A DNA stretch of 63,522 bases, filler included, from Parasitella parasitica NRRL 2501 (Eukaryota; Fungi; Mucoromycota): the NCBI GenBank assembly GCA_025201805.1. It is 14 parts of 14 records of this genome, joined end to end, with 100 filler letters (N's around TTAATTAATTAA, not from the genome) between each part and the next. Parts side by side here need not be neighbours in the genome. Positions count along the whole stretch, not along the records: positions 60,496 to 61,586 come from MU619678.1; 13 more parts are not named here. One strand, 5' to 3'. Positions 60,496 to 61,686 of the stretch are shown one piece after another. Within the stretch, counting starts at the first letter, position 1. Each line of letters begins with the position of its first letter. Under the pieces are notes generated by a model that was given only the letters and a program-made list of their open reading frames with translations, did no database searches and had not been told where the DNA came from. The position numbers and the translations under genes were made by a program.

Positions 60496-60692
60496 GATGC
60501 GGGATGGATGTATGCTGGTTGTCGAGATATCGTGCTTCAAAGTTGAACTTTTTTGAAAAAATTGATGGATACGCGAAAGAGCCTCTATCTTTAAAGAAAT
60601 AGAACTTTTACTTGTAAAAAAGTGATGTATACGCGAAAGAGCCTTACGCGTAAAAAAAATGGCGTAAAACAGAACTTGTAAAAAAGTGATGT
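60496..60692 (-). mobile_element. Stacked LINE 5'-leader stubs
   Basis: TACGCGAAAGAGC at 60570-60582 and 60630-60642. CTTGTAAAAAAGTGATGT at 60611-60628 and 60675-60692. These match 22170-22223 and the reverse complement of 23102-23190. Confidence 0.7.
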
Positions 60693-61360
60693 TTTTTTGT
60701 ATTAAAGCTACATAGGTAATAGTTTAGCAATTAATGTTAAACATTTAAAACATATTTTTATAATTTGTTATTAAATTTTAATTTAGGTAAAAAAAAAATT
60801 TATAATTGACTTTAATGCTATAGTTGTTGTTTTTTTAGCTTAATTAAATAAATTTAAAATAATATAATAAAAAACTAAGAATATATTAATAATTTAAAAA
60901 ATAAAAAGTAACCAAAAACAATAATCTTGTTTAAAGTTTTAAAATTATGTTCTTTTCAAAAAATTAGTTTAAAAGGTAAATTATTAACAACGCTTTATTT
61001 TATGATAAATATTGTAATTGTTAAATTTTTAAATATTGTAAAAATAACACCTAAAAAAGTTTAAAAATAAAAAATTAATATGTTGCGCCAAAAAGCTTCT
61101 GTTATTTTTAAAATTTGTAAACCAAATTACTGTTTTACTTTATAACAAATATTAGTGATGGTCTAAAAATATCAATTGTACACAAATTGACATAGGTAGT
61201 GTGTAGTACTAAATCTATTTCAACCAACATAGATATCGCATAGATGTTGTGGATTTGAGCTTCATTCAGGTAATGTATTAAGATATTTACTTTTTGAATT
61301 CGCATAGGTATTGCTAATGTTTTGCAAGATTTATCGTACTAAATAACATAGGTCGCATAT
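60693..61360. other. Candidate core centromere C: AT-rich tract plus phased CATAGGT array
   Basis: ~500 bp at ~85-95% AT, then AG(G/A)T sites at 61194, 61231, 61268, 61306 and 61350. Confidence 0.72.
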
Positions 61361-61423
61361 ACGTATCACGGATTTCTTTTCAAAAGTTACACTCCATCTG
61401 GTTATGGTAAAAAAAAAATATTA

Positions 61424-61545
61424 ATGGTTCGCTTGGTGCTCCTGTTCCTCAATTGGCAGGGCTACGACAGACTAATCCTCTGTCATCTTTGCTGTTTAAT
61501 TTGGAGTTTGAGCCACTTCTTCGTTCTCTGCTTGCTTGTCCTTTT
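61424..61545 (+). pseudogene. Short L1 RT fragment
   Basis: NGSLGAPVPQLAGLRQTNPLSSLLFNLEFEPLLRSL corresponds to the RT GLRQGDPLSPLLFNLA.EPL motif. Confidence 0.75.
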
Positions 61546-61686
61546 TTTTTTCTGTGTATTAAGGTTTTTTTTTTTTTTTTTTTTTTNNNNNNNNNNNNNN
61601 NNNNNNNNNNNNNNNNNNNNNNNNNNNNNNTTAATTAATTAANNNNNNNNNNNNNNNNNNNNNNNNNNNNNNNNNNNNNNNNNNNN

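Follow-up and report, generated by a model that had tools for sequence, protein, structure and literature searches.

The Mucorales are an order reported without CENP-A. Their mosaic core centromere, which carries a 41-bp centromere-specific motif, was described by Navarro-Mendoza et al. (2019; 10.1101/706580), and this motif was later used for the annotation of core centromeres in seven more Mucoromycota, i.e., eight species in all (PMC12925627). An AT-rich stretch is a defining feature of the core (10.1101/706580; PMC12925627), and the annotated cores are frequently located on very short contigs (PMC12925627). Further traits of this centromere type are a single core on each chromosome and an extensive pericentromere that lacks genes and carries H3K9me2. 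Kinetochore-protein ChIP (Mis12, Dsn1) exists for M. lusitanicus only, in which the major Mis12/Dsn1 peak begins at the motif (10.1101/706580). In the published centromere table, the string ACCTATG occurs 320 times versus 0 for its complement (PMC12925627). Four of the listed cores belong to Parasitella parasitica, whose assembly is fragmented (PMC12925627).

One of these four cores lies within the window analyzed here (the whole stretch of 63,522 nucleotides, along which all positions are counted unless another locus is named). Positions 60496-61586 correspond to the predicted CEN 4 of Parasitella parasitica (Mucoraceae), a Mucorales “mosaic” core centromere. The box block described below probably represents the half of this core on the side of the motif, in which a conserved composite of the motif core and a second copy 37 bp further on is accompanied by extra copies specific to this core. 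[quoted passage not shown]

Identity and anatomy of the CEN 4 contig

The piece derived from MU619678.1 (GCA_025201805.1; 60496-61586) is a contig of 1091 bp with repeats at both ends. Reverse-complemented and read from its last base onward, it corresponds to the row “Parasitella parasitica, GCA_025201805.1, MU619678.1, CEN 4”, and the 41-bp motif listed for CEN 4 in the Motif column is the reverse complement of positions 61182-61222 (Supplementary Data 3, PMC12925627). The centromere call for CEN 4 is a prediction made from motif and AT content. An earlier note on this DNA had read the region as a centromere core; this reading is supported, the exact locus being a predicted core centromere in PMC12925627. 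Because the locus and its 41-bp motif are already known and catalogued, the finding as a whole is not new, and the first box described below is the core of the known motif.

The piece displays the mosaic layout, with a LINE 5′ UTR, about 460 bp of AT-rich DNA, the motif and then a fragment of LINE reverse transcriptase (RT). The LINE 5′ UTR (60496-60689, minus strand) is Grem-LINE1-like, directed away from the core and high-copy in the genome, contains the direct repeats D1/D6, and shares 74-79% identity with the 5′ UTRs of LINE copies of M. velutinosus and M. circinelloides. It is composed of monomers of about 60-64 bp, each with a terminal CGCGAAAGAGCC, and 2.5 copies are found at positions 60556-60690. 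In M. velutinosus and M. circinelloides, the LINE 5′ UTR copies contain one or two monomers, each with the CGCGAAAGAGCC end. The UTR is followed by a short LINE 3′-end-like string on the minus strand (60690-60710), made of a T-run and then GTATTAAAG; the same 16-nt string ends LINE copies in loci L008 and L019, and the one in CEN 4 is probably the remnant of an insertion. The AT-rich core stretch (60718-61181), identified from its composition, has a GC content of 9-22% in 100-bp windows (78-91% AT). Such a stretch adjoins the motif in every Mucor core that was fetched, and in CEN 4 the motif starts at position 61182.

On the other side of the motif, translation revealed a decayed, 5′-truncated fragment of LINE reverse transcriptase (GLRQ.NPLS...LLFNL; 61417-61542, plus strand), directed away from the core, 83% identical to a Grem-LINE1-type ORF2 of M. 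velutinosus and high-copy in the genome. After position 61542, other copies of this RT repeat run on differently, and the contig ends with T-runs around TGTATTAAGG (61543-61586, minus strand), which on reading the sequence resemble a LINE 3′ end. With the LINE 5′ UTR on the minus strand at the left and the RT fragment on the plus strand at the right, both flanks are LINE pieces directed away from the centre. Besides, the core is bordered at 60690-60710 and at 61543-61586 by short strings that reproduce the LINE 3′ terminus (T-run plus GTATTAAAG/G) exactly or nearly so, suggesting that the core borders carry very short, 5′-truncated LINE insertions.

The box block located between these elements (61182-61385) was single-copy at ≥80% identity (run X1), whereas the LINE parts were high-copy. 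No diverged or paralogous copy of the motif block was found in the contigs of four runs at 80% identity, the LINE flanks alone being present several times. In runs X9, X10 and X12, which bear the same species label as the runs that contain the core, no contig matched the core (60718-61383) at ≥80%, and only LINE parts and short AT-rich bits were recovered; either the core is strongly different between strains or the labels span different taxa. An Rfam search of the piece gave no match at E values up to 1 and the 56-aa ORF that crosses the box block had no recorded product by exact look-up, so that neither a structured RNA gene nor a protein-coding gene is supported.

Same-strand copies of the motif core

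On the plus strand, CATAGGT was found at positions 60711, 61191, 61303 and 61347, and CATAGAT at positions 61228 and 61239; neither string occurs on the minus strand of the piece. For CATAGGT, about 0.03 occurrences are expected in the whole piece. When both variants were considered (CATAGRT), six sites were observed vs. 0.04 expected from dinucleotide shuffles of the piece, and none of 5000 shuffles reached six.

The first of the boxes that follow the AT-rich stretch (box 1, CATAGGT, 61191-61197, plus strand) constitutes the invariant core of the 41-bp motif published for P. parasitica CEN 4 (61182-61222, minus strand), with the AT-rich stretch downstream of this motif on the listed strand (PMC12925627). 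Box 1 has the conserved left flank TTGTAnACAnATTGnn, and ATAGGT was invariant across an alignment of six cores from three species, including M. velutinosus and M. circinelloides. On the listed strand, the motif core ACCTATGCCAATTTGT is present in CEN 4. Box 2 (CATAGAT, 61228-61234, plus strand) is located at +37, 6 nt beyond the 41-mer, and box 2b ((TCG)CATAGAT, 61239-61245, plus strand), located at +48, forms with it an 11-bp direct duplication. The box at +112 (AATTCGCATAGGT, 61303-61309, plus strand) reproduces the motif core well over an extended length, aligning with box 1 at 82% identity across 17 nt (D11), and has the 13-mer ACCTATGCGAATT (minus strand) in common with the primary motif of CEN1. 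The box at +156 (AAATAACATAGGT, 61347-61353, plus strand) is likewise a good extended copy, with 81% identity to box 1 in a 16-nt alignment (D12), and after it comes TCGCATA, a string of family D4. Finally, a lone CATAGGT (60711-60717) bounds the AT-rich stretch at its far end and, like the other boxes, is on the plus strand. All these additional CATAG(G/A)T sites represent further same-strand copies of the motif core.

The earlier note had placed five AGRT cores at positions 61194, 61231, 61268, 61306 and 61350, i.e., at steps of 37, 37, 38 and 44, and these coordinates and steps are correct. Four of the five sites are indeed CATAGGT or CATAGAT, but the third (TTCAGGT, 61265-61271, plus strand) is weak, having AGGT alone in common with the boxes and no match to CATAGRT, while the corresponding offset of CEN1 already falls within LINE sequence, and the perfect CATAGAT at 61239 (+48) had been omitted.

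Such a group of sites might have arisen as a chance cluster in AT-rich DNA or belong to the promoter or UTR of the flanking retrotransposons. The GC content of the box block is 29-34%, LINE sequences lie on both sides, and a motif-agnostic test was weaker than the targeted one, since some 7-mer using four letters with at least four occurrences appeared in 2.5% of the shuffles. This origin is nonetheless highly improbable in view of six sites, all on a single strand, where 0.04 were expected. Moreover, the LINE 5′ end is precise, being sharply defined in L008 and L018 (AGGCTCTTTCGC...), and upstream of it the outer LINE copies are devoid of boxes; hence, the boxes are not LINE sequence. The contrast between the single-copy block and the high-copy LINE parts also argues against a retrotransposon origin, as does the fact that the motif had been independently catalogued. 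The same-strand reiteration of the motif core in CEN 4 is therefore real.

Conservation and spacing of the boxes among cores

The other cores used for comparison came from pericentric DNA of annotated genomes, which was fetched with LINE proteins as anchors. Five cores of M. velutinosus were obtained (L014, L015, L016, L008 and L020), with 41-mers matching the CEN3, 6, 2, 9 and 5 rows, respectively (PMC12925627). Among the loci fetched with the same anchors, L005-L007, L009-L012, L017-L019 and L023 contained no core. In each of the five M. velutinosus cores, diverging LINEs flank an AT-rich stretch of some 400 bp, and the core contains a box 1 of the form YATAGGT with the flank TTGTAAACAAATTGG (5/5), and a second box exactly at +37 (AATAGGT, once AAGAGGT), just beyond the 41-mer (5/5). 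In these five cores, no third box was found between the +37 box and the LINE 5′ end, and there was no box at +48.

The other cores of P. parasitica show a comparable arrangement. According to hand counts on the published table, CEN1 contains CATAGGT, then TAGAGGT at +37 and CATACGT at +48, the LINE starting from +77, while CEN3 contains TAAAGGT, then GATAGGT at +37 and CATAG at +48, followed by the contig end. CEN2 (MU619621.1) was left out at the motif, the clusters of P. parasitica LINE proteins having yielded no further members; at least one further ACCTATG is present in this core, far from its motif. The +37 box is hence present in the three readable cores of P. parasitica and in the five cores of M. 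velutinosus, i.e., in 8/8 cores from two genera. The +48 box is common to CEN 4, CEN1 and CEN3 of P. parasitica, and the boxes at +112 and +156 were seen, among the cores compared, in CEN 4 only. In the one M. circinelloides core that was read (L013), CATAGGT is accompanied by AGGT-containing strings at +18 and +23 and by AATAGGT at +70, with no clear +37 box, and the 41-mers of M. circinelloides and M. lusitanicus contain a box-like ACCTTAT 17-18 nt from ACCTATG.

When the whole block was aligned locally with the cores of M. velutinosus and M. circinelloides, nothing significant was obtained outside the box regions. Between Parasitella and M. velutinosus, the spacer separating box 1 from box 2 is almost unalignable while the distance is identical. 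From these sequence comparisons, box 1 and the box located exactly 37 bp further on appear to constitute a conserved composite element, the second box of which the published 41-mer does not reach. The texts of 10.1101/706580 and PMC12925627 mention neither a +37 box nor any repetition of the motif core. The earlier note knew of no description of the reiterated phasing; the motif itself is published. A conserved second box at +37 beyond the 41-mer, with core-specific extra copies beyond it, may thus be a new detail.

One may object that the published 41-mer, i.e., box 1 and its flanks, alone matters, and that the +37 box and the following ones are neutral and look conserved through recent paralogy and decayed local duplication. 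The 30-bp spacer is itself about 70-80% conserved among the M. velutinosus cores and, because cores within a species are paralogues, part of the constant +37 step in this species is simple homology. The sequence of box 2 varies (CATAGAT, TAGAGGT, GATAGGT, AATAGGT, AAGAGGT), and the M. lusitanicus/M. circinelloides lineage has no clear +37 box. In addition, the +37 and +48 boxes of CEN 4 look like an 11-bp local duplication, so that duplication is part of the history of the block; the earlier view that the spacing had been kept by selection and did not reflect duplication is thereby weakened, although the identical distance across diverged spacers in two genera agrees with it. We regard a role restricted to the 41-mer as unlikely, since AGRT is found at the same offset in all eight cores of the two genera despite the almost unalignable spacer, since the orientation of the boxes is constant, and since the LINE insertions of all the cores that were seen stop past box 2, none nearer than +77.

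Whether the spacing extends into a regular array is a separate matter. The earlier note had proposed that five same-strand sites with a selected period of about 37 bp (3.5 helical turns) provide a multimeric binder with a platform of fixed geometry, the spacers being free to drift, and that this platform is general to the cores of the genome. The chain of five AGRT cores is the starting point of this proposal; such a chain was obtained in no dinucleotide shuffle of the block, which speaks for it, but the shuffles also have fewer AGRT sites. The conservation of the first step, with identical distance and different spacers in Parasitella and M. velutinosus, and the additional ACCTATG of CEN2 are also in line with it.

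The statistics within the piece are less favorable. The block contains eight AGRT tetramers, five of which had been used for the array. With the strict CATAGRT offsets (0, 37, 48, 112 and 156), the best Rayleigh R was 0.76, corresponding to P = 0.24 versus random placement for any period between 20 and 60, whereas the hand-picked set of five sites gave P = 0.012, a value obtained post hoc. Site 3 is not a box, and the true box at +48 breaks the phase. Measurement of autocorrelation had been suggested as a check; at lag 37, the base-by-base autocorrelation over 61180-61385 was not above that of shuffles. Tandem Repeats Finder detected no array at 61180-61390. A tandem repeat or satellite with a 37-bp unit is not supported, given the lack of such an array, the background level of lag-37 autocorrelation and the recurrence of only the boxes and a few flanking bases. 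A metagenome scan for the four-box pattern with the proposed spacing gave no other copies either, as its four contigs were all unrelated tandem repeats. These JGI metagenome contigs (L001-L004) contain long arrays of the 9-bp GCCATAGGT and its variants and a perfect 37-bp tandem repeat, and are chance matches to the pattern, unrelated to the centromere.

Nor was the 37/37/37/44 geometry seen in the other cores that were read: in CEN1 the LINE begins at +77, the M. velutinosus cores have two boxes only, and in L013 the next box lies at +70. Besides, as 37 bp correspond to about 3.5 helical turns, neighboring sites such as boxes 1 and 2 are on opposite faces of the DNA, so that a multimer bound on one face is not obviously favored. 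A phased platform of five sites is consequently decidedly unlikely. The five-site array is only partly real and is probably not a general five-site phased platform: its first step recurs in 8/8 readable cores, but regular phasing within the piece is not borne out by the strict sites.

The reading that we prefer is that of a conserved two-box composite to which individual cores have added further copies. The boxes are putative recognition sites for one or several sequence-specific centromere proteins, and such a factor would nucleate the kinetochore lacking CENP-A and CENP-C at the motif side of the AT-rich stretch. Box 1 and the +37 and +48 boxes would act as a functional composite, whereas the distal boxes at +112 and +156 would most likely be local duplications of the motif. 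These extra boxes may add binding capacity but, being absent from other cores, would not be required. That proteins bind here, and that boxes 2 to 5 play any role, is what we infer from an observed anatomy. A stronger version is possible but should be held as tentative, namely that the determinant of Mucoraceae centromeres lacking CENP-A would be, in place of a single 41-bp motif, a direct array of (H)ATAGGT boxes in which the second must stand exactly at +37, as it does in Parasitella and Mucor velutinosus, and that variable further boxes would tune the loading of a DNA-binding protein. If true, eukaryotic chromosomes would here possess an equivalent of the iteron-type centromeres of plasmids.

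Several other features were noticed in the cores or near them. In CEN9 (L008:7865-7905) and CEN5 (L020:8136-8167) of M. velutinosus, an inverted and degenerate two-box copy is present on the far side of the AT-rich stretch, with CATATAGAT or CATAGCT, then GCGAATAGGT 25-32 bp further on, beside the 5′ end of the other LINE. These two cores are therefore quasi-palindromic, and the inverted copy may correspond to the “minor” kinetochore peak of M. lusitanicus. Parasitella CEN 4 instead has the single direct CATAGGT at 60711 on its far side. In M. circinelloides PS15(-), three CCCTAA telomere-type repeats lie in the part of the core that separates the AT-rich stretch from the LINE 5′ end (L013:1775-1795; JBOZQX010000007.1, at about 490.6 kb). 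Lastly, a gene of 405 aa with a Pfam NDC10_II match (L020:22702-23991) is located about 15 kb from the CEN5 core of M. velutinosus, on the margin of the LINE cluster. In budding yeast, the DNA-binding subunit of CBF3 is Ndc10, and the NDC10_II domain also occurs in Crypton-type elements. This gene could be either a transposon relic or a lead to a centromere-binding protein.

The addition made here to the known motif is small but concrete, as the conserved element extends beyond the 41-mer to +37 (to +48 in Parasitella), with more copies in some cores. Scans with the 41-mer only capture just part of this element. The element also provides a better-defined bait of about 60 bp, as well as a simple test by spacing changes and mutation in tractable Mucor species.

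Comparison with known centromeres and partition sites

The closest system is the mosaic core of the Mucorales, with which CEN 4 shares an AT-rich stretch beside the motif, short unique core DNA and Grem-LINE1-type elements directed away from it (10.1101/706580; PMC12925627). CEN 4 differs from the published motif by its box 2, located 6 nt past the end of the 41-mer. In M. lusitanicus, the only species in which kinetochore binding has been shown, the second box is a different one and lies within the 41-mer, at +17/18.

CEN 4 also resembles the point centromere of budding yeast (CDEI, AT-rich CDEII and CDEIII, with Cbf1 and CBF3), in that a short, genetically defined centromere combines an AT-rich spacer of species-typical length with a neighboring conserved protein-binding motif, a parallel drawn in part in PMC12925627. 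However, the two have no sequence homology, and the AT-rich stretch of CEN 4 is about 460 bp long vs. about 80 bp in yeast. In CEN 4, unlike the point centromere, the motif core is reiterated on one side and the core lies within a retrotransposon-rich pericentromere.

Iteron-type partition sites include R1 parC, F sopC with its 43-bp repeats and the STB of the yeast 2-micron plasmid with repeats of about 62 bp. By analogy with these sites, the short same-strand boxes of CEN 4, set tens of bp apart, could assemble a segregation complex from several copies of a single DNA-binding protein. Iteron-type sites are nevertheless made of regular tandem units that can be aligned, whereas the spacing in CEN 4 is irregular (37, 11, 64 and 44) and its units are unalignable outside the box; the number of box copies, moreover, varies between Mucoraceae centromeres.

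Finally, the CENP-B boxes of mammalian alpha satellite have been cited as a parallel to the Mucorales motif (PMC12925627). As in CEN 4, a short sequence-specific box recurs in centromeric DNA, and the CENP-B box is bound by a non-histone protein. CENP-B boxes, however, are carried by satellite monomers over megabases, alongside CENP-A, whereas the few boxes of CEN 4 occupy about 170 bp of unique DNA and belong to a lineage from which CENP-A is reportedly absent.
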